DNA of 63,112 bases, filler included, from Lenisia limosa (lineage: Eukaryota > Protista > Breviatea), in NCBI GenBank assembly GCA_001655205.1. It is 17 parts of 17 records of this genome, joined end to end, with 100 filler letters (N's around TTAATTAATTAA, not from the genome) between each part and the next. Parts side by side here need not be neighbours in the genome. Positions count along the whole stretch, not along the records: positions 16,081 to 26,278 come from LPNZ01011720.1; 16 more parts are not named here. One strand, written 5' to 3'. The position numbers were made by a program, and so were the translations under genes. The notes under the pieces were generated by a model. It worked only from the letters and a program-made list of their open reading frames with translations. It was not told the DNA's origin and did not search any database. Of this stretch, positions 4,913-26,716 are shown one piece after another (position 1 is the first letter of the stretch; the number at the start of each line of letters is the position of its first letter).

Positions 4913-6979
4913 GTTGTCATACGCAGTAGACATGTCAGGGAAGCGGGTTCCGAAGGTGGCTTCGTTGGGGCCGAAAAGAGGGTTGAGGCCTGCAATGTCA
5001 GGAGGAGTGATGAAGGGTAAAACAGCAGATTTCTGTGACTTGTGTGATACAAGTGGACGCTCACCGGAAAGGTTGACGTGGTCATCGATGACGACGACGG
5101 AGTCGGCTGAAAGGTTGTCAACGCATGACACGACCTCGTCCATGACGTGAAGGTCAGTAGCCTGGGGGGGGGGGGGNNNNNNNNNNNNNNNNNNNNNNNN
5201 NNNNNNNNNNNNNNNNNNNNNNNNNNNNNNNNNNNNNNNNNNNNNNNNNNNNNNNNNNNNNNNNNNNNNNNNNNNNNNNNNNNNNNNNNNNNNNNNNNNN
5301 NNNNNNNNNNNNNNNNNNNNNNNNNNNNNNNNNNNNNNNNNNNNNNNNNNNNNNNNNNNNNNNNNNNNNNNNNNNNNNNAAATATATATATGAGAATGAA
5401 ATAAGTAAAATCGAGGAGTAAACCCCTAAAATGGCATAAGGAAAGTCCAAGTATGCGAGTATGAGGCAAGGGGAGAGGCGAGCCAGACCTTGAGAAGGGC
5501 GAAGACACGGACGGCTTGGGTGACGTCAGCCATGGGGAGGAGGGTGCAGGCCTTGGGTTGGCCGGTAATGGCAACAACACGCTGAATGGTGAGCAAACAA
5601 TCACTAACAGCACGCTTAATGGCTAGCAAACAATCATCAGGTCTATAACTACTGTCAGTACGATGATTATATACAGTCTCGGTATTAACGAGAGCTTCCA
5701 AGGTTGAGAACGTTAAATTGGAAGACTTCGCTCACCTTGCCCTCAGCAGTGACTCCGGCAATGACCTTTCCGGGGTGGAGGTGGGGGATGGATTCGGCGG
5801 GGATGACGGATGCGTTCTTAAGGTTCTTCTCAAGGGCGGCAGCAGCCTCAGCAGGGGCAAGAATGGCGTGGAAGGACTGCGGAGTGAANNNNNNNNNNNN
5901 NNNNNNNNNNNNNNNNNNNNNNNNNNNNNNNNNNNNNNNNNNNNNNNNNNNNNNNNNNNNNNNNNNNNNNNNNNNNNNNNNNNNTATACAGTGACCGGAA
6001 TAAGTCTTGACCGATTTGCTATTTTATTTCCCAAGGAAAATAAGTCAAGACCTATCCCAGTCACTGTATTATATCATATATGCTAGAACATATGATATGA
6101 TATCATATATTATACTACGTACATGTATAAACAAAAAAAATAATACAAATAAGCCCCTGTCGCAGCGTCACTAACCTCAGTCATGTTGGGAAGGTTCTTT
6201 TTGAGGGCCTCAGCAGTGGCCTTAACTTCCGACAGGTGGCAATGGGAGTAACTGGGGAGAGGAGAGTGATGATAATGAGGGGGAATGCTTGTCTGCATGG
6301 GCAGAACAAGGCAAAAACCAAAGCGCAAATCCATGCATCATTATTTAAATACCGCTACTTTAGCAAAAGAAGGGATGAACCTGCTAATATTATTACACCC
6401 CAGATAATCTAAAACTATGAAGAAACTCCAGATGAGGCAGACATCGGAGGCTCACCGGATGCGGGCATCAGCAGCAGGCTTGGTCTTGGCAACAATGTGG
6501 GGGAGGTAGAGGCTGGAGACCGTACGGGCGGCGGCGGACTTGGTGATTTCAGCAAGGGCCTTGGTAGCTTGTTCGAGCTGGGCAGATGTGGGGGCAACAG
6601 CAGTGGTCTTGCCTGGGTTGTAAGTCTTTGACTTGCTTGTCATCCTTATCTCACGCCCCCATACCAGCAGTGTAGACAACGGGGCAGACGGTGGCTTGGG
6701 GCATCTCAAGCTCAGCGAAAGACTGCAGCAGTGCCCTGAAATGTCATGTTTGTAGAAAATGAACCAATACAATATTTATGGATAGATATGACAAGTCCAG
6801 AGTTTTAGCTACTTCCCTTAAATATCGATATTTTCAAAGTTGGGAAGCTTTAATAATAAATATAACGAAGTGAGCCGACATGTTGAAGACTGTGGAGACG
6901 GGGCAGCCGAGAAGAGCGCCGTAAGAGACCTCGCATTCTGAGGGGTAGGCGGGGCCGACAAAGCCGCGCATGCACTTGC
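4913..6979 (-). CDS. Purine nucleoside phosphorylase (PNP/MTAP family I)-like protein with at least two tandem, degenerate PNP domains; partial at both ends
   Basis: After removing in-frame intron 4990-5064 (GTGAGC...CTGAC...GCAG): [31 protein letters not shown], a strong PNP signature. Upstream exons EVKATAEALKKNL, HAILAPAEAAAALEKNLKNASVIPAESIPHLHPGKVIAG, RVVAITGQP...VTQAVRVFALLK align to the PNP N-terminal half. Further upstream, GFVGPAYPSECEVSYGALLGC...ELEMPQATVCPVVY aligns to a PNP C-terminal half. Confidence 0.75.
5989..6066. mobile_element. MITE family 2 (Tc1/mariner-like, 78 bp), full copy with TA TSD, in a PNP-gene intron
   Basis: TA|CAGTGACCGGAATAAGTCTTGACCGATTT...AAGTCAAGACCTATCCCAGTCACTG|TA; long imperfect TIRs. 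Confidence 0.88.
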
Positions 6980-15860: not shown

Positions 15861-16238
15861 GTGTGTGGATGTTCGGGGAGTGTAACTTTAAGCAATTCCT
15901 TTTATGCAATACAAATCCTCTATGTCATAGCTAAACCCTTTCCAGGTTAATTACGCTGTTTCTTTTTTTTTTTTGTTGTTNNNNNNNNNNNNNNNNNNNN
16001 NNNNNNNNNNNNNNNNNNNNNNNNTTAATTAATTAANNNNNNNNNNNNNNNNNNNNNNNNNNNNNNNNNNNNNNNNNNNNTTCAGTAAAAGAGGAACGTA
16101 AACAACGATAGCAAAAAATGAGTATTCAATTGTAATATCGAAAATAGGTTAAGAGACTAGTTCAGTTCATCAGATATTTGATTCACAAAATAAAATTACA
16201 ATTCCTCTTTTGAAATTTTTGAGCTACTTTGAGCTAAA

Positions 16239-17789
16239 ATGGTAAATACCAGACGTAACAAGCGTGCTGCGTCCCCATCTCCCCCTCCTCCTTAAGAAGA
16301 AAAGGCCAAGAAGACTGTCAGGGCCAAGAAGAAGGTTGTCCAGCGTACCATCACCAAGGAGATCGATGAGGTCCCTCAATAAGTAGCTCAAGAAGAAGAC
16401 TCTGCCTCAGAAGCCGCTGACTCCAACATTGAGGCTCTTCCTCGCCGCTCTGGTAAGAACTTAATTGTAATTCCATGTGTTTTTATTCTTTGAAATGCGA
16501 CTGTTCATCCTTCCTACGCGTTGGTGAGCTTAGCATCAAAATCCAGTGTCTTAATCCAGCTCTTGGTGCGGATAAGTCGCTGGTACATCTTTCACTCAAA
16601 GATGCTGACTTAATTGTCCTCCCAAACCTTCACTTAGTACTCCATTGAGGAGGAATTGTGGTTTAAAGCTGGTCACAGACACTATCTTGGACTGATCTTG
16701 GATATTATTCACTGTACAGACTCCGCTTCCGCTTCCGTTGCCTTGTCCACCCAGCCTTTCGACATCAAGGCACAGCTCCGCGAGTTTTTCGCTTCTGTAA
16801 GCTTCCTTAATAATATGATGGAAGGCAGTATCTCACCTTTTAGGGTGAGCTCACTGCTGCCGATCTCGGCATCGATGCCACTCGGTCTCCTCAAGAAGGT
16901 GCCCCAAACTGACCTCCTTCTCCCGATAAGGTGTATACTATCAATGAACCCTGAACGATAAAAGGGTTTCTCTTTGCAAATATCAACAATAATGCGTACT
17001 TACCAGATAAGGGAAGTTGCTTCAAATTGAATTTATTGCGGGGATGCACTTAGGAACCCTTTCACTGTCCCCCCTCCCCACCCTACCCTCTGGTAAATTT
17101 TGGAATACAAGGGTATACTTCACCCTCAAACTACGTCAACATGGTTGATCTAATTGAGTTTTACCCTCTTTCAATATTCCCTTTGATGGATTCTACCTCA
17201 TATTCAAGTAATTTTATTAATGTGGGTCCAACACCCAGTAATCAATTCAGGTCTGTCAACACCCACGTCATTCCCTTCCTTGACAATTACGATGTTAAGG
17301 CTTCCCTGACCACCACTATCATGGCGGTGGCCAACGGTCAGTTTCTTGGGGATGACAACCTCAAGGCTGTGGGCAACCGCCTCCTCAATGGAGATGTGCG
17401 AAGTGCACAGAACAAGGTGCATGATTATGACTAGACATGCATTTTCTTACACAGAGTCATTTTCACGAATCTAAATGTCCAGATTGACGGGTCCAAAGAC
17501 GCCCTTCTTTGGCGCTGTCGACACCTACCACATCTCTGGCAAGAAGAGAAGGATTGCAGTGGATAATTTCTATTACACATGTTACATAGGGTGCTCCTGT
17601 TTTATGAGTTATACCTCTCACACCCAATCAGTCATATCTGCAGCGCCTTCAACGCGGACAGTGGCTGCTCCAAAGCCAAACTGTGGGCAGCGGCACGTGT
17701 GCTTTTTCTGTAAAAAGGCTGGGCATTCGGTTAAATCCTGTCCCAAGAAGAACCTTGGACAGGGTTTAATCACACCCAAGTCTGGATAA
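16239..17789 (+). pseudogene. ORF1 / gag-like of the YR retrotransposon, disrupted, with C-terminal CCHC zinc knuckle
   Basis: MVNTRRNKRAASPSPPPP... with in-frame TAA at 16293 and 16380; ends with CFFCKKAGHSVKSC (CX2CX4HX4C). Confidence 0.7.
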
Positions 17790-17830
17790 ATGCATCCGTT
17801 TTGAAATAAGTGTTTAACAAATTGCATTAA

Positions 17831-19475
17831 TTTTTATACGAGATATTAACTTGTGATCAACTGAAGATATACAGATACGGTGCATATTATGGAATTAAGC
17901 CCCGATTCTCACCACTTACAAGATTAACCCCGTCATGATGGATGATGAGATGAGTAAGATTAAGTTCGGACGTTGTATCTGCAATCCTGTGGAAGGGTGC
18001 TGATATTGGAATCAAAGAATCTGCCTCAGCCAAATTCCAGGTTTGAAACTGGCCAAATGCACAGGAAAATACCAAGGTTCTCTCAGACACGTACAAGGAA
18101 CTTGTAATTGCTGGAACAGTCACTGAGCTCGTAGTTCCCCCAATGTATGCAAACTACAACCCAGTTGGAGTTGTTGAGAAAGAAATTCCCCATTTAAACA
18201 AGACGAAGTACCGCCCGATCCTGGATGGTTCTCGCTTCGCAATTGATACCCTCAAACGCCCCTTCTCACTGGACTGGACTGCCAGGCTCAAGGCCCTGTT
18301 ACAGCCTAACTATTTCTTGTTCTATGCGGATATGAGTGCCTTCAACCTCATTCCTGCTCGGCCTTCAAGCCGCAATTGTCTCTGCTGTAGGCTGTCAGAT
18401 GGCAAGCACTTTCAGAATAATTATCTTCCTTTTGGGTTCCAAAACTGCCCAGTACTCTTCGACGTTGTATCTCGAGCTACGTTAAAAATAAACAAGAGAC
18501 AGGTTAGAGACGGTGTTATTCTACGTCAGTACCCCTCCCTCATCAATTCCTCCTCTGTCCAATTCACTGTCGCCGAAATTAGATATCTTCAAGAGAACCT
18601 GGATCGTTTCATTTCAGAAAGGAAATGGCACATCTCTATTTATTTTGATGATGTCTTTGGTGCGGCGGAAACTGAACTTTTCGGCCGATACATCCTCGCT
18701 TCAATTCTTGTCTTCTGGACCCGGTATTCCCTACGGAGAGGAGAAGGTGTTCTTACCAGCTCCAAATATGACAGTACTGGGAGTCGAAATTGACACCCCT
18801 ACCATGACTGCTCGCCTTCCCCCAGAAAAGACTGCAGCTTACATCCACCACATCCACGTGGCTGTTCACACACCCCAATCGGTTAAGTCCCTCCAGTCCT
18901 TTGTTGGCAAATTAGCCTGGGCTGGTAGGGTGATACCAGTGGGCCGTCGCTTGACCAAGGCTATCCACAACGATATCAGCCTGCTCAAATCCTCCCCTGA
19001 CCCGATAACCGTGTCTCAACACGCACGGACCTCTTTGCTCTCGGTGTCGTTACTCTGGACCCACCACAAGCCAAGACGACCCACTTTGGTGTACGGATGC
19101 GTCATCCACTGGTATTGGTGGTTTCAGTCCACCCCAAAAGCTGTTCTTCTCTGGCCATGTACCCCAAGATGCGCAGTCATTACATATTAATGTACTGGAA
19201 TTACTTACTGTGCGAGTTGGACATGCAGTCTTCGGCAGTCTGGTTGCGACAACAAAATCGCAATCTCCTGGTTCAACCAACTGGTAAACTCCACTGCCGT
19301 AAACGCCATCTGTTAGGATAGTAATTGCTGCTTAATGGACTCCCAAAGCTCAATGTGTCTCTCCTACATTTCTACCGAAAACAACATCAAGGCGGATGAA
19401 GCTTCGCGCCATGATCTCTCCCATCTTGAGGGCTTTTCCAGGGTACCCATTCCCTCTGACGCTTGGACATTCTAG
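17831..19475 (+). pseudogene. Reverse transcriptase / RNase H of the YR retrotransposon, disrupted
   Basis: KGADIGI...NPVGVVEK...KYRPILDGS...FYADMSAF...YLPFGFQNCPVLFD...IYFDDVF; GIPYGEEKV...MTVLGVEID...LQSFVGKLAWAGRVIP; RNase H motifs TDASSTGIGG, HINVLELL, CDN, SYISTENNIKADEASR across frameshifts; TGA at 17936, 17951, 18044 and TAG at 19314. Confidence 0.9.
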
Positions 19476-19583
19476 TCCAAAGTAGTTGTATCTTTCCATT
19501 GTCTTTTGATTCATTTATCTGATATCACCGGATTACATGCCATTTAGAAAAAATAGGTCCATTTGATTAACTTCCCTCATCAG

Positions 19584-20486
19584 GACATGCACAAGAACTG
19601 GAAAAAAAGAAAACAAAATCAAGAAGATGGGTGTCAGAAAGACCACATCCAAGACCTATGGATCCGCTGTTCGCAGTTACAAGTATATGTGTACAGAATT
19701 GGGATACACAGAATTCCCGATGACTGATGAGAAGGTTTGTGTGGCCATATACGTATAACTACTTCCTGACCTCACAGGTTGAACTCTGGATTGCTCATGT
19801 CTCATCAACGATCAAAAGCGCGCAAACGTTATGTGTCCGCTCTTGCACGATATGCACTAGAAAATGGCCAAGAATACCCAACGAAGAACCGATTTTGGTC
19901 CAGCTTCCATGGTTAAGAATCTGCAACAAGAACTCAAAGCCATCCCTGTAAGACAGGCCCTACATATGTCGATTCCACAATTCAAAGCTCTTGTTGCCAC
20001 CAGGCCTCCGGTAAACCCCCCCGATAACATCCTAATTCGAACGGTCTATTTAGCTGTTTTCTTTGGAACTGCAAGGATAGGTGACATCCTTCCACCGACC
20101 GCGAAGGACATCGAGAGAGGTCCACCTTTATCTTCAGTCAAATATTCCACAAATGGTACATCCTTTGTCAGCGGTTTCACAAAGAACTCGAAACGGCCCG
20201 TAACCTTCAGTTACCAACGAACGATATCAAAGACTATTTGCCCTGTGCAGCACTATTAGCTCTCCATGAACAGTCGTGCAACAATGAAAAGAATGCCCAT
20301 CGTGCCTTATTTGCTTGGCCATCAGGGAGCCTACTGAGAGTACGCGTTTCTGAAGATGAGGCCAACCGTTTCACCATCCATTCCTTCCGCCATACCAGCA
20401 CGACCAACATGACTGGCACTGAGGAGGAGAAGATGAAACGTGGAGGCTGGAAGTCCATTAGGATGCTTAAGAAGTATGCCCATTGA
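19584..20486 (+). pseudogene. Tyrosine recombinase of the YR retrotransposon, with a putative intron and frameshifts
   Basis: GVRKTTSKTYGSAVRSY (N-terminal helix); catalytic motifs FFGTARIGD (R), TKNS (K), CPV, HSFR (H-x-x-R), GGWKS and KKYAH (Y). Confidence 0.9.
19735..19777 (+). other. Putative 43-nt spliceosomal intron inside the YR coding region
   Basis: AAG|GTTTGT...CCTGACCTCACAG|GTT; contains an in-frame TAA and is 3n+1 long; removal gives ...FPMTDEK|VELWIAHVSS, fitting the YR N-terminal domain. Confidence 0.7.
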
Positions 20487-20965
20487 TTGAAATGTATTAT
20501 ATATACTATATATGGATTACATGTGCTTCCGTGATTTTGTTTGGATTTTCGGGGAGGTGTTCTGGGGTTTTCAAGCCCCAAACACAATCGTCTGACTGTC
20601 CTTCTGACACTGCAATCCCAGTTCCCAAATATACCAGACTCGCAATCTCCATAGTATTCATATGGAATAATAAGAAATGGGTATTGAAAGGTTTTCTCAA
20701 CCAGTCAACAAATAATCCATCCCACTTTCACACGCGATAGACGATACTCCCACTTACCTAAAATATTAGAGGAATACGAGAAATTCAAAATAAGNNNNNN
20801 NNNNNNNNNNNNNNNNNNNNNNNNNNNNNNNNNNNNNNNNNNNNNNNNNNNNNNNNNNNNNNNNNNNNNNNNNNNNNNNNNNNNNNNNNNNNNNNNNNNN
20901 NNNNNNNNNNNNNNNNNNNNNNNNNNNNNNNNNNNNNNNNNNNNNNNNNNNNNNNNNNNNNNNNN

Positions 20966-23900
20966 CGCAGCGCCTCAGCTATGACCCACGAATGCCGGTG
21001 GAACAACGCTTGCTGGAGAGTCAGCAGGAGGAACGTCAAGAGTGAGCAGACGCATGAGGACAGTTTCTAAGTCAAGCCATGGAGTAGTTAGGGATACAGA
21101 AACGCACCCCCAACCACAGCCCAAGTAGACCACGCCTTGACCACGCGGCTGTCGCTGTCGCCGATGGTGGCTGCGATCCGCTCTATCTGGCTATTCAGGA
21201 TGGCAATGTCTCCGTGGCCTGGGGGGGGGGGGGNNNNNNNNNNNNNNNNNNNNNNNNNNNNNNNNNNNNNNNNNNNNNNNNNNNNNNNNNNNNNNNNNNN
21301 NNNNNNNNNNNNNNNNNNNNNNNNNNNNNNNNNNNNNNNNNNNNNNNNNNNNNNNNNNNNNNNNNNNNNNNNNNNNNNNNNNNNNNNNNNNNNNNNNNNN
21401 NNNNNNNATACTGCGAAAAGGTACTAATCACGATATAATCGAAATTCACATAGAAAAAAAACAAAAGAAGAAGCGAAAAAATGTCTTATTGACCGACCCA
21501 CTTGGGTCTTTACAATTCTCGAGCGTAACCATCATTTCCGCCTCCTGCTGAATAAGGGCTTCGGCTTCCGTCATTCTGAGCGGTCAGTTATGGAAAGGTC
21601 TAAATGAGCTATAGTTACAATTCAACTCGTGATTCATCATCTGCTTCCTCAGCCTTCCCACCTGTTGATAACGTAAGACACCCAAGGATGCTGGTGGCTT
21701 GTTTGAGGCAAATGCTGGATCATCCTAAAACGTGAGCAATGTATCACTGCTCATCAAACGCTCTCCGGCCTTACAATATCAAGCACCCCGATTCCTCTCC
21801 CCAGCATACGTGGTCACGACTGTTTTTGCGATATGGTCCTTGCAGAGGTCCAGTAGTTGCGACATGAGATTGCAGAGCCTGGATTCCATAGGACTCTCCT
21901 CGATAAATACAACCATTGCCGCAATTGCCTCTGCTGCATTAGACCCGTTGAACCCAAGTCGATGGCTTTATTTTGGTCCAGAAAAACAGAATTCACCAAT
22001 AATATTTCCCCATTTTTCCCCAGTTCATTTCGGACCCCCCCCCCCCCCCCNNNNNNNNNNNNNNNNNNNNNNNNNNNNNNNNNNNNNNNNNNNNNNNNNN
22101 NNNNNNNNNNNNNNNNNNNNNNNNNNNNNNNNNNNNNNNNNNNNNNNNNNNNNNNNNNNNNNNNNNNNNGCATGACTCCAGGAACTCAACATAGAGCGCT
22201 TGTTGCTGGGCGGTTAGCTTCAAACAAACAGAGCTTCCCCACAGCCCAAGCTCACTTCGCCATCATCTGAGGGTGGCACTGCCAGGAGATAGTCCGCACA
22301 GTGAGACGTGAGCTGATCAATGTTGGTGCGCTGGGGGGGGGGGGGGNNNNNNNNNNNNNNNNNNNNNNNNNNNNNNNNNNNNNNNNNNNNNNNNNNNNNN
22401 NNNNNNNNNNNNNNNNNNTTATTTTTTTTTACTTTCCAATATCATGTGATATACTAATACAATAATATTAGTTACATTTTCAAAGACAAAACAAAGAATT
22501 CATGGGATGATGGTGGGCCAAACCAACCAACCGCAAGGAACGCTAGGGAGTAGTAGCACCGTTGCTCATGTCGTATCATATCGTCTGGAATGGCACTGAA
22601 GAGTGAATGCTTCTAGGCATCCACAGAATATTGCTGCATATGCCAAGTTACCCACAGAATATTGCTGCATATGGGAACGACAAGTTCATTGGACTGATGG
22701 TTCTCTCCTAAGATGGCCAGCATAATTCTGAGTAACAGGTGCGGCTGAACATAGTTGTTGGGATTCTTTGGAATGTGCCTGGGGGAGGAGGGTCAAATTG
22801 AAATGTAAAAAAAATTTATAAAATGGAGGGGGAGGGGCTGTTTCAAACATTTACGGTACACACAAAGACATCCAACCCACAACCCACACTGTCATCAATT
22901 CGGTTAGCTTTTGCTCGCATCTGTGAAAGAGCTCAAACAGGGGAATGCTCGGGTCCAGCAGGCCGTTAATAGCGGCCTCGTTGATCTACAGACCCATGAT
23001 ATGAAGTGCTGTTGATCTACATACATACCCACCATGATATAAAATGATATGATATGAAGTGGTGTATTACCTCCTTTTGGTAGTAACGACCCCCCCCCCC
23101 AACTGTTGTCTCCGTGAATGCCTGGCTTCCAGTGGTCTGGGGAGGGGGGTAAAACAAAAACATGAAACAAAAACAAACACAAAATATCAATTCATAGGTA
23201 AACACAAGTTTGTGAAAAGGAAACCAAAACCAGGTAAGTCTCTCCATTCTGATAATATCATGCCTGATTCTTAACCCAAGAGTGGCGAACCCCCTTACAT
23301 TGACCATGTGACACACCGCGTCGACAACGTTCTGCTGTTCCGGCATCTGAAGATGGTGAGCTCACAAGTTGAAAAAAAAAAAGATGATAATAAAGTAAAT
23401 TCAAATGATACAATGCAGAAGGGAATCAATAATGTCTCGGCAAACCTGCTTCGTGTAGATGGTGTCCACAATGATTTTGACGAGTTCGGGGTCCAAGAGT
23501 AGGGTGGCCACACAAGGGTGCAGACACTGCAGAAGTTGCGGCAGTTTCTTCGACCAATCACTAACAGTTTTCGCTTCTTTCATCTGTGTAGGTTATTGAA
23601 CCTGTACGAGGCCTCAGACCAAATTAATGGGCAAATGTGGCCTGATTATCATAATTAGATCTTCAGCCTTTGAGCCTTTCGGACTGGCGAGATGTGCTCA
23701 CTATGATATTTCAAATTCTAGTAATGATATAAAATAGCAATACGAAAAAAAAAAGGCTGTTTCTGGCCGAAGCCGTCCAAATCATCACGTTTATAAGAGA
23801 TATTGAATTATAGTATAATATTAATTCACCCAATCATTTGCCTTACAACGCTTCCCGCGTGCCTCCCCAGCATGATGTAGACATAGAGTTAGTGGTATGG

Positions 23901-26110
23901 TATCTATCAGGCTTGCCGAAATATGTATGTTACCCACGTTGTGGAGGATGAAGATGGTAGCAATGCGGGCTGAATGACCCTCAGAATTGTTCATCATCTC
24001 TTCAGAGAACAGAAGGTCGAGGACACTATCATGGCTGCATAGTGGGTCAGAGAGGCTGAAAAGAAGAGGCGATATAATGATATGTGACCCCCCCCCCCCA
24101 ANNNNNNNNNNNNNNNNNNNNNNNNNNNNNNNNNNNNNNNNNNNNNNNNNNNNNNNNNNNNNNNNNNNNNNNNNNNNNNNNNNTCCACGAGGCCAGGATG
24201 CGAAGTTGGAAGGATAGTTCAAGAGGTGCGCCAAACATATCCTAGAGAATCACATGGTTGGAGCAAGCAGTGTGATTCCATGATCATAAAGTAGTGTGAA
24301 GCTGATCCCCATGATCGGATATGATAACGTTTAATAGATGGTATTTGATATCCTGCGTATATACTCTTTGACATCCCATATTTGCGCATAAACCAGGTAT
24401 CAGAAAGCGTGATTGGTGGGGACCCTCACCAGTTCAACAATGCTCAAAGCGTTGGCCAATTGGCAGTTTTCAAGCTTCGAAATCCGCTCCACAATGTTGT
24501 TTTTGCTACGACAAATGAAAACAAAACAGATGCTATGAGAAGAAAATGGCAGTATCCAGATGAAGCCATTCACCCCTCAACGTACTTATAAAAGGACAGC
24601 ATTGCAATGAGATAGGGACAGAATGTTTCCTGTGGCAAACACACGAGTTTGTTATCCGAAAGGTACGAAATAATCAAAGACAAGCACTTCACGAACTTGC
24701 CGTTATTCTTTTCTTTCACCTGTGAGTTAGCAAAAGTGTGACCGGAGCTTTATTTCAGCTTGAAAAACAACACCTCTCCTACTTTGAAAGCGCTGAATTG
24801 GTTTCCTTCTTCCAACCTGAGCAGTTATGAGAGGAACACAGAGATCAAGCGGGAACATTGTTAGCCTACGAGTAGTCGGAGACGGACGCAATGAGGCAAT
24901 GCACAAAGCCAAGGTGGAACAGGAGGGATGCGCTGTCTTTGCTCTCAGCAATAGCGATCAGCAGGTCACTGACGATATCAACATGGAACGGAGCATTGGC
25001 TACAAGCACTGGGGGGTTAGGTCGACTGAACAAAAAAAAAACAAGCAAGTGAACTGGCATTTTGGGGATCGGTACTGTCATGAGGGTGAGAAAAAGACAG
25101 CAGTCCGGGGTACAAAGCAGCTTACTCGAGAGGAATACTATGCAAGCGGTCTGATTCTTTTCGTTGGGATTCTACGAAGTAAAGCGGGTCATATTATATC
25201 TCTATTTAACTGCAGGCAATAATGGGTACTTCATTCTGATGTTGAATCCGAAATCCGATCTTTGATCACAGCCCCCCCCCCCCCNNNNNNNNNNNNNNNN
25301 NNNNNNNNNNNNNNNNNNNNNNNNNNNNNNNNNNNNNNNNNNNNNNNNNNNNNNNNNNNNNNNNNNNNNNNNNNNNNNNNNNNNNNNNNNNGCGTGGCAT
25401 CGTGGATTCTCTGCATGCCGTGCTACATGATCAGTCCACACCACATTTACAGGTTGTAGTGACAGATGGCCGGCCTACCTTGAGTGCGAATTGCTCCGAC
25501 TGGACCACCAGCTCGTAACAGAAGTCCTCAAGTCCTCCAAGCTGGGGCCTGGAAGGTCAGCTGATACCACACGAAGCTAAGCAAACATTATCATTTTGCT
25601 GAGCTTCGAGCTGTCCTCCTGGTAGAGAATCGTGGCCACCACCAATTGGACGGCCTCACGGGATTTGGCGCTTTGGGGGGCTTTAATGTACTCCTGGGGT
25701 GTCAGATTCGCTTCATTCTTTTACTCTGTACCCGGTATCAAAGGCTCAGACTATTAAATGCAGTCAGAAGCCCCCCTCCTACCTCCATGATTGCTGCGGT
25801 GGCGGTGAAAAGGGCTGTGGACGCGTTTTGAAGGAACGAGTGTTGCAACAAGCTTCGGTTGTTCTGGAGGGCAGCCTGGGGGAGGGGGGGGGGGAGTAAA
25901 ATTGGAAAATTTAAGAAACAAAAAAGCCCAGATCAACTGTTGCTGGCAACACGGGGTGGGGGGTAAGGAGGTGTCAAGTTTCATTTAATATGTTTTTGCA
26001 CAGCGAAATAGTACTCTTCACCACAATTGAATGTTCTCAGACAAAGGACGTACCCACCTGAATTGAAGGGTACTTCTCAGTTTCGACCTCTGACACGGGA
26101 TGTACGTTCG
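20966..26110 (-). CDS. Large multi-exon alpha-helical (ARM/HEAT-like?) hypothetical protein; may be more than one gene
   Basis: Many AG/GT-bounded exons, e.g. AALQNNRSLLQHSFLQNASTALFTATAAIME, LGGLEDFCYELVVQSEQFALK, MPEQQNVVDAVCHMVNVRGFATL, AEAIAAMVVFIEESPMESRLCNLMSQLLDLC, LLLTLQQALFHRHSWVIAEAL; family not recognised. Confidence 0.45.
23755..23875. repeat. Dispersed repeat family 3, longest copy
   Basis: Right part matches 9525-9605; left part (TCTGGCCGAAGCC...CATCACG...AGAGATATTG.ATTATAGTA) matches blocks at 26380-26455. Confidence 0.75.
25896..25960 (-). repeat. Dispersed intronic repeat family 4, abutting a 3' splice site
   Basis: GAGTAAAATTGGAAAATTTAAGAAACAAAAAAGCCCAGATCAACTGTTG is closely similar to 49024-49075; related copies at ~49895-49945 (opposite strand) and ~57412-57450. 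Confidence 0.8.
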
Positions 26111-26716
26111 CTAATTGGACCTGTGTGTGTGTGGGGGGGGGTGAATTAGAGGTAAGAAAGGTTCTTTAGCTTCCTACAGACGTTGTCACGATATCATACA
26201 GTAAATGATATCATATACTATATATAGTTAAAACCGCGAACATGATTAAAACCGCGAACAAAAAGGAGGCTTTTCTTTNNNNNNNNNNNNNNNNNNNNNN
26301 NNNNNNNNNNNNNNNNNNNNNNTTAATTAATTAANNNNNNNNNNNNNNNNNNNNNNNNNNNNNNNNNNNNNNNNNNNNTAAGAGATATTGGATTATAGTA
26401 TCTGGCCGAAGCCTTTCACACCATCACGAGATGTTGGATTATAGCACCATCACGCTTAGAGGAGACATTAGAATGTGGTAAAAATACTGATTACTGGTTT
26501 AGACAATATGCTGTCAGACGAATCCGCTCGAATCCTCGAAAAGCCAATATGTGCCAAATTTGGTTAGGGGGGGGGGGGGNNNNNNNNNNNNNNNNNNNNN
26601 NNNNNNNNNNNNNNNNNNNNNNNNNNNNNNNNNNNNNNNNNNNNNNNNNNNNNNNNNNNNNNNNNNNNNNNNNNNNNNNNNNNNNNNNNNNNNNNNNNNN
26701 NNNNNNNNNNNNNNNN

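Follow-up and report, generated by a model that had tools for sequence, protein, structure and literature searches.

Analysis of the window, by which we mean the whole stretch of 63,112 nucleotides from the Lenisia limosa assembly GCA_001655205.1, showed by ORF reading, Pfam matches and translations that the piece at positions 16081-26278 houses an element on the plus strand. This element is a dead copy of a Ngaro-like tyrosine-recombinase retrotransposon, in which gag, reverse transcriptase (RT), RNase H and recombinase follow one another in that order, all on the plus strand. The gag-like region (17141..17789) occupies two frames and contains a CCHC zinc knuckle (CFFCKKAGHSVKSC); it was recognized from its ORFs, from a Pfam zf-CCHC match (E=0.008) and from a tblastn match to ORF1 of locus L006. 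An intron joining the two gag frames was considered (candidate at 17417-17454, 38 nt) and rejected, the resulting frame being wrong. The RT and RNase H region (18047..19470) was identified from a Pfam RVT_1 match (E=0.002) and from its translations, with a YFDD box near 18650 and the RNase H motifs TDASSTGIGG... and ...NNIKADEASR. It matched the RT genes of loci L004 and L006 (tblastn, E=4e-8 to 9e-7) and is broken by at least three frameshifts. A spacer of about 150 nt leads from RNase H to the recombinase (about 19470 to 19627).

The recombinase gene as a whole opens with the ATG at 19627 and closes with the stop at 20484-20486. Its putative exon 1 (19627..19734) consists of 36 codons (MGVRKTTSKTYGSAVRSYKYMCTELGYTEFPMTDEK), encodes the first helix of the N-terminal domain and ends in ...MTDEK; it matched positions 5716-5811 of locus L002 (tblastn, E=3e-4) and also aligned with the N-termini of full-length relatives. 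The putative exon 2 (19778..20486) is decayed and was recognized from a Pfam Phage_integrase match in its last piece (E=2.9e-4), from the HMMER matches P0001-P0003 and from the full-length alignment. When frames are labelled by position modulo 3, exon 1 lies in frame 1, VELWIAHVSS in frame 2, KRYVSALARYALENG in frame 0, KNLQQ...TARIGD...TKNSKRPVTF in frame 1, and CAALLAL...HSFRHT...GGWKS...KKYAH, with the stop, in frame 0. The gene beyond exon 1 and the 43 nt that follow it therefore contains at least three more frameshifts (at about 19805-19829, near 19913 and near 20220), and the window copy is a pseudogene. The motifs of a tyrosine recombinase can still be read, namely the arginine (TARIGD), the HxxR box (HSFRH), the tryptophan and the C-terminal tyrosine (KKYAH). 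The Pfam support for RVT_1, zf-CCHC and Phage_integrase is weak yet consistent.

The element resembles Ngaro-like elements (order DIRS) in having a gag with a CCHC knuckle, RT, RNase H and a recombinase as last gene, all on one strand, and Pfam detected no methyltransferase domain in either the window or its relatives' pol genes. This succession of genes, which leaves no space for a methyltransferase, is that of Ngaro-like elements as opposed to DIRS1 or PAT. Split direct repeats, which are defined by the layout A1 ... B1 A2 B2 (PMC13465315), were searched for as well; no repeat reached 20 nt, and blastn-short between the two ends, of which the 3' end is lost to an N gap at 20795, gave nothing significant. 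No further copy of the element was found within the piece 16081-26278, the Rfam and tRNA scans gave no match, and neither did Pfam on the ORFs neighbouring the element, which was run in search of host genes and their introns. The stretch just upstream of the element (16081-16237) is a separate high-copy repeat, with a depth of 723 in the DNA run X1 compared to about 35 (about 20 times the single-copy level) and 11 contigs. Six runs of N are present downstream (20795-20965, 21234-21407, 22051-22169, 22347-22418, 24102-24183 and 25285-25391), several of them flanked by G or C homopolymers, such as GGGGGGGGGGGG before 21234. These runs look like scaffold gaps beside poly-G sequencing artefacts, and the first run removes the 3' end of the element.

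The two parts of the recombinase gene are separated by a 43-nt segment (19735..19777, plus strand), which is a candidate phase-0 spliceosomal intron on the strength of signals read directly (GTTTGT...CTGAC...CACAG), of a position shared with locus L002 and of relatives that encode no residues there. The donor GTTTGT lies at 19735-19740, CTGAC at 19766-19770 and CACAG at 19773-19777, and the branch-point-like A (19769) stands 8 nt before the final base of the segment, so that the donor, the branch point with its A, the acceptor and the length described in an earlier note on this DNA were all found as described. The note's further claim that the unspliced sequence gives a TAA plus a frameshift was also borne out: when the frame of exon 1 is read through, a TAA is met at 19756-19758 and a TGA at 19778-19780, and the two flanks are one frame apart. 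Once the 43 nt are taken out, DEK is followed directly by VELWIAHVSS.

These signals have to be read with caution. The segment has a GC content of 44%, equal to that of its exons, and frame 2 contains no stop over the whole 43 nt (FVWPYTYNYFLTSQ), which makes a simple 1-nt frameshift a serious rival. Enumeration of the GT..AG pairs nearby gave eight that restore an open frame, three of which use the acceptor at 19777, and the signal in the window alone is thus no better than chance. The alternative donors at 19741 and 19753 were ruled out by homology to L002 only. It is the comparison with relatives that lifts the intron signal above chance. A different account of the same segment is that it once encoded a variable loop of about 14 residues and has since decayed, the change of frame being one more of the many frameshifts in this pseudogene. 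The other frameshifts of the gene (at least three), the open frame 2 and the eight frame-restoring pairs all agree with such a loop.

A profile search brought up full-length recombinases, 309-385 aa long, in metagenomes and Glomeromycota. A model of the window recombinase, from which the 43 nt were removed and in which an X was placed at every frame break, was aligned by MAFFT with 10 of these full-length recombinases. The junction fell inside a block that is ungapped across the 10 relatives (FPMTDEK|VELWIAHV in the window compared to WPISLEHLLAYI). Loci L004-L006 are 5-kb units in which an RT gene (RVT_1) immediately precedes a recombinase ORF that is uninterrupted, and the recombinase is continuous in the DNA across the site in L008 (from the Racocetra persica genome), L003 and L009. 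The ungapped alignment and the uninterrupted relatives show that the 43 nt do not replace coding residues. The earlier note had named, as an outcome that would speak against an intron, homologues encoding about 14 extra residues here, whereas the relatives have no residues at the junction; this is the first point against a decayed loop. The window element differs in this respect from the Ngaro-like relatives that were read (L003-L009), whose recombinase is uninterrupted while its own is interrupted by a GT-AG segment.

Several of these relatives, L004 and L005 (ENA), L006 (Logan) and L008 (Racocetra persica), are intact-looking 5-kb Ngaro-like units, laid out either with one pol ORF of 1184 aa or with ORF1 and RT in separate ORFs, and with a recombinase of 337-340 aa behind these. 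The annotations of Glomeromycota genomes (Racocetra, Cetraspora, Ambispora) also include many fragments of related recombinases. No relative was found by the scan of JGI metagenomes.

Evidence on the segment itself came from two diverged loci. A full HMMER search returned three proteins only (P0001-P0003), and a word-index protein search with a 131-aa piece of the recombinase gave no match. P0001 corresponds to locus L002 and P0002 to locus L001, with identities of 39-47%, and both are on contigs of the ENA assembly ERZ3820729. The coverage of the L001 and L002 contigs is 33-36, like the single-copy depth of X1, which hints at the same or a related organism. In L002, exon 1 ends in ...PITEEK at 5811 and is followed by a 42-nt segment, read in the DNA at 5812-5853, of the form GTTAGT...TTTAG (GTTAGTTTATCG...AAATTTAG), after which VVLWLAYIS begins at 5854. 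The codon boundary is identical in the two loci (EEK|VVLWLAYIS in L002 and DEK|VELWIAHVS in the window), and the length of each segment suits its own frames, being 43 nt between flanks one frame apart in the window and 42 nt between flanks in the same frame in L002. The two segments are 43% identical with their shared ends included, compared to 50-83% for the flanking coding blocks, and their inner sequences are, as judged from this comparison, unrelated. The L002 segment has a GC content of 17%, compared to 45-54% in its exons, and contains an in-frame TAA and an in-frame TAG. Locus L001 reads AAG|GTTAGTTTTATCG, with 12 of the 13 bases equal to the start of the L002 segment, directly upstream of the recombinase core. 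L001 probably shares the intron position, and a deletion seems, tentatively, to have taken the remainder of its segment together with the first part of exon 2.

Comparison of the window and L002 segments also bears on the decayed loop. The 42 nt of L002 are a multiple of three, as a loop would require, and its two in-frame stops would be abolished if TAA were read as glutamine, a code hinted at by the ORF at 16249-16451 flanking the element. The segments of the window and L002, however, have no protein similarity although both of their flanks are similar; both start with GTTxGT and end with AG precisely at a homologous codon boundary; and the L002 segment stands out by its 17% GC within exons of 45-54%. 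An alternative code in which TAA and TAG specify glutamine finds no support in the element copies: where these have in-frame stops, the relatives have Tyr, Lys or Ser and not Gln, which speaks for decay and against recoding. A decayed loop is therefore unlikely in our view. A sequence eliminated from DNA in the manner of Paramecium was also ruled out, since there are no TA boundaries. The flanking ORF (MVNTRRNKRAASPSPPPP...) is located upstream of the element and continues past two in-frame TAA codons as far as a donor-like site, GTAAGA; it could reflect a host code in which TAA is glutamine, or it could be no gene at all.

The near-copies present in the DNA run X1 were compared with the window over the same site. 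Exactly three X1 contigs cross it, with depths of 36.7, 39.6 and 97 (173.4 in all), and the segment is kept in all three, one of which is identical to the window. The contig of record 5 covers 19513-19918 with a net gain of 7 letters and keeps the segment. The contig of depth 97 has four 1-nt indels within 19739-19754, with a net loss of 2. Among the differences listed, exon 1 of the two non-identical contigs departs from the window by substitutions; those at 19656 and 19701 are synonymous, and the rest alter a single codon. No joint skipping the 43 nt was present among the X1 rows listed, although contigs cannot prove its absence. The examination of other copies proposed in the earlier note thus gave three near-copies that retain the segment. 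X2, a polyA metatranscriptome and the one RNA run of the same study, had no contig on the stretch and hence no coverage of the junction.

The presence of the segment in three near-copies and in two diverged lineages excludes its gain in a single copy. The earlier note had offered gain after insertion as one of three scenarios, which is contradicted by these copies, and the import of the recombinase module from an intron-bearing Crypton-like transposon (or from a host gene, as we also considered) as another. Cryptons are established intron-bearing elements with a tyrosine recombinase, which is what lends the idea of an import its appeal. Every recombinase from the HMMER and profile searches whose context was read, with the exception of the L001 and L002 fragments, nevertheless adjoins an upstream RT gene and has no intron, and no DUF3504 or Crypton-type match was obtained. 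Because the related recombinases are linked to RT and are intron-free, the nearest of them being directly downstream of RT genes, capture from a Crypton finds no support. We regard late gain and capture, taken together, as very unlikely.

Identity by codon position was used to compare the window, L001 and L002. With exon 1 taken into account, position 2 gave 0.62-0.89 and position 3 gave 0.27-0.44; for exon 1 against L002, it was 0.50, 0.62 and 0.34 at positions 1, 2 and 3, respectively. Over longer stretches, the identity at synonymous sites was 0.27-0.34, which is about the level of chance. High identity at position 2 together with low identity at position 3 shows that the three lineages diverged under protein constraint, up to the point where synonymous sites were near chance level, and they were thus active elements while the segment persisted. 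The proteins of the lineages sharing the putative intron are now 38-48% identical. The window copy, L001 and L002 are all pseudogenes, and an intact intron-bearing copy is not among them.

These values also bear on the possibility that the intron is real and that its copies spread as DNA, by Crypton-like excision and reintegration or by segmental duplication, in which case its retention would tell nothing about the RNA template. A tyrosine recombinase would in principle be able to mobilize DNA circles, the depths in X1 near the site correspond to a low copy number (about 1-3 times the single-copy depth), and the recombinase fragments of L001 and L002 have no RT beside them, with a gag fragment oriented the opposite way in L002. 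In the window copy, on the other hand, gag, RT, RNase H and the recombinase stand in the usual order, its closest intact relatives are 5-kb units of RT plus recombinase, and coding-constrained divergence with synonymous sites at about chance is better explained by long-lived active elements than by duplications. We consider spread as DNA improbable.

No RT was found beside the recombinase genes of L001 and L002, and the retrotransposon origin of these two loci rests on homology and on the opposite-strand gag fragment. The latter is located on the minus strand of L002 (5082-5288), about 550 nt upstream of the recombinase ATG, contains a CCHC knuckle (CPRNHSCFFCKQAGHPKQGCPK) and matches the gag of the window and ORF1 of L006. 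The opposite orientation of gag and the absence of an RT nearby mark L002 as a remnant, either rearranged or nested. A second intron-like segment is present in L002 at 5963-5999 (37 nt, GTATAA...CTTACTAAGTATCCAG), with a branch-like TACTAAG motif; it was rejected as an intron, as its removal leaves the wrong frame and it has no counterpart in the window.

The reading that we prefer, with a probability of about 0.72, is that the window contains a dead Ngaro-like copy with an old U2-type GT-AG phase-0 intron after codon 36 of the recombinase gene, which would have been kept through the use of unspliced RNA as template. The best explanation of the comparisons is that this putative intron predates the split of at least two, and probably three, lineages of elements. 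Its persistence implies that reverse transcription would have to use unspliced RNA. The full-length unspliced RNA would serve as the template and each new copy would inherit the intron, while complete recombinase could be produced only from RNA from which the host spliceosome had removed the intron; the supply of recombinase, and hence integration, would depend on splicing. Among the three scenarios of the earlier note, unspliced genomic RNA together with a spliced recombinase mRNA thus stands as the best remaining one, in which splicing itself, the choice of the RNA template and a regulatory role are what we infer from the DNA. As gag-pol would remain on the spliced RNA, intron-free daughter copies should arise, which speaks against this reading; their absence among the copies seen may be an effect of sampling. 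That a Ngaro-like lineage held a recombinase intron through long-term retrotransposition, with a template RNA that escapes splicing and a recombinase that needs it, is a broader proposition, to which we would give slightly better than even odds.

The element was also compared with other known systems. Penelope-like elements are described as highly unusual among retroelements in keeping introns (PMC8557442). They resemble the window element in that spliceosomal introns are kept after retrotransposition, a likeness that implies no claim of homology, and they differ from it in belonging to another RT clade and in having a GIY-YIG endonuclease and no tyrosine recombinase. The introns that were studied functionally, those of Penelope and Chlamys-3, are located in the 5' UTR over an internal promoter, whereas that of the window element would lie inside the coding sequence of the integration enzyme. 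In retroviruses and LTR retrotransposons (BARE and Cer1, for example), the unspliced RNA is the genome and the spliced RNA has a different protein output (PMC3735527, PMC10309623). An unspliced genome with a spliced mRNA is also the working model proposed here, but splicing drops large parts of gag-pol in those elements, whereas the 43-nt intron of the window element would merely open the frame of the last gene. Cryptons and their introns are the subject of PMC3212892 and PMC13465315. Their tyrosine recombinase gene is likewise able to carry introns, but they lack RT, RNase H and gag, all three of which are present on the plus strand upstream of the recombinase in the window element. The word 'intron' is absent from the DIRS and Ngaro surveys PMC3783388, PMC3266345 and PMC4157794, and we found no earlier report of introns in tyrosine-recombinase retroelements of the DIRS/Ngaro type in the openly accessible literature.

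Copying through RNA should erase introns, and a retained intron is therefore informative on which RNA gets copied. If the preferred reading of an old intron kept on unspliced RNA is correct, these elements would join the Penelope-like ones as a second kind of retroelement in which intron retention is routine, and full-length unspliced RNA would be the template in the poorly understood class of tyrosine-recombinase retrotransposons. Splicing would act as a gate on integration, and host splicing could uncouple expression of the recombinase from that of gag-pol. The segment would also provide a natural 'marked intron' for following retrotransposition in an uncultured or little-studied organism. 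For annotation, the case is a warning that searches based on ORFs only miss or truncate intron-bearing recombinase genes.

The frames that follow the junction were also compared with the earlier note. Its prediction that splicing gives DEK|VELWIAHV held, while the claim that this block leads straight into KRYVSAL did not, KRYVSAL being one frame further on. Since KRYVSAL is in the third frame, an extra +1 shift is required at about 19805-19829, and the extra base is probably in the run of four A at 19814-19817. A second intron was rejected as the source of this shift, there being no GT..AG pair of suitable length. L002 likewise needs a +1 shift between its V.LW.A..S and YVSALA blocks (5881-5911), at another spot, between AGG and TAT. 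We read the shifts of the window and L002 as two independent 1-nt insertions, a coincidence that is worth noting. The change from frame 0 to frame 1 at 19911-19916 sits exactly on a stop (GGT TAA G) and resembles a +1 slip site. Euplotes-type +1 frameshifting at stop codons was considered and rejected, as it fits the shift at 19913 alone and not the others. The other frame changes look different, and that at 19911-19916 is probably plain decay.
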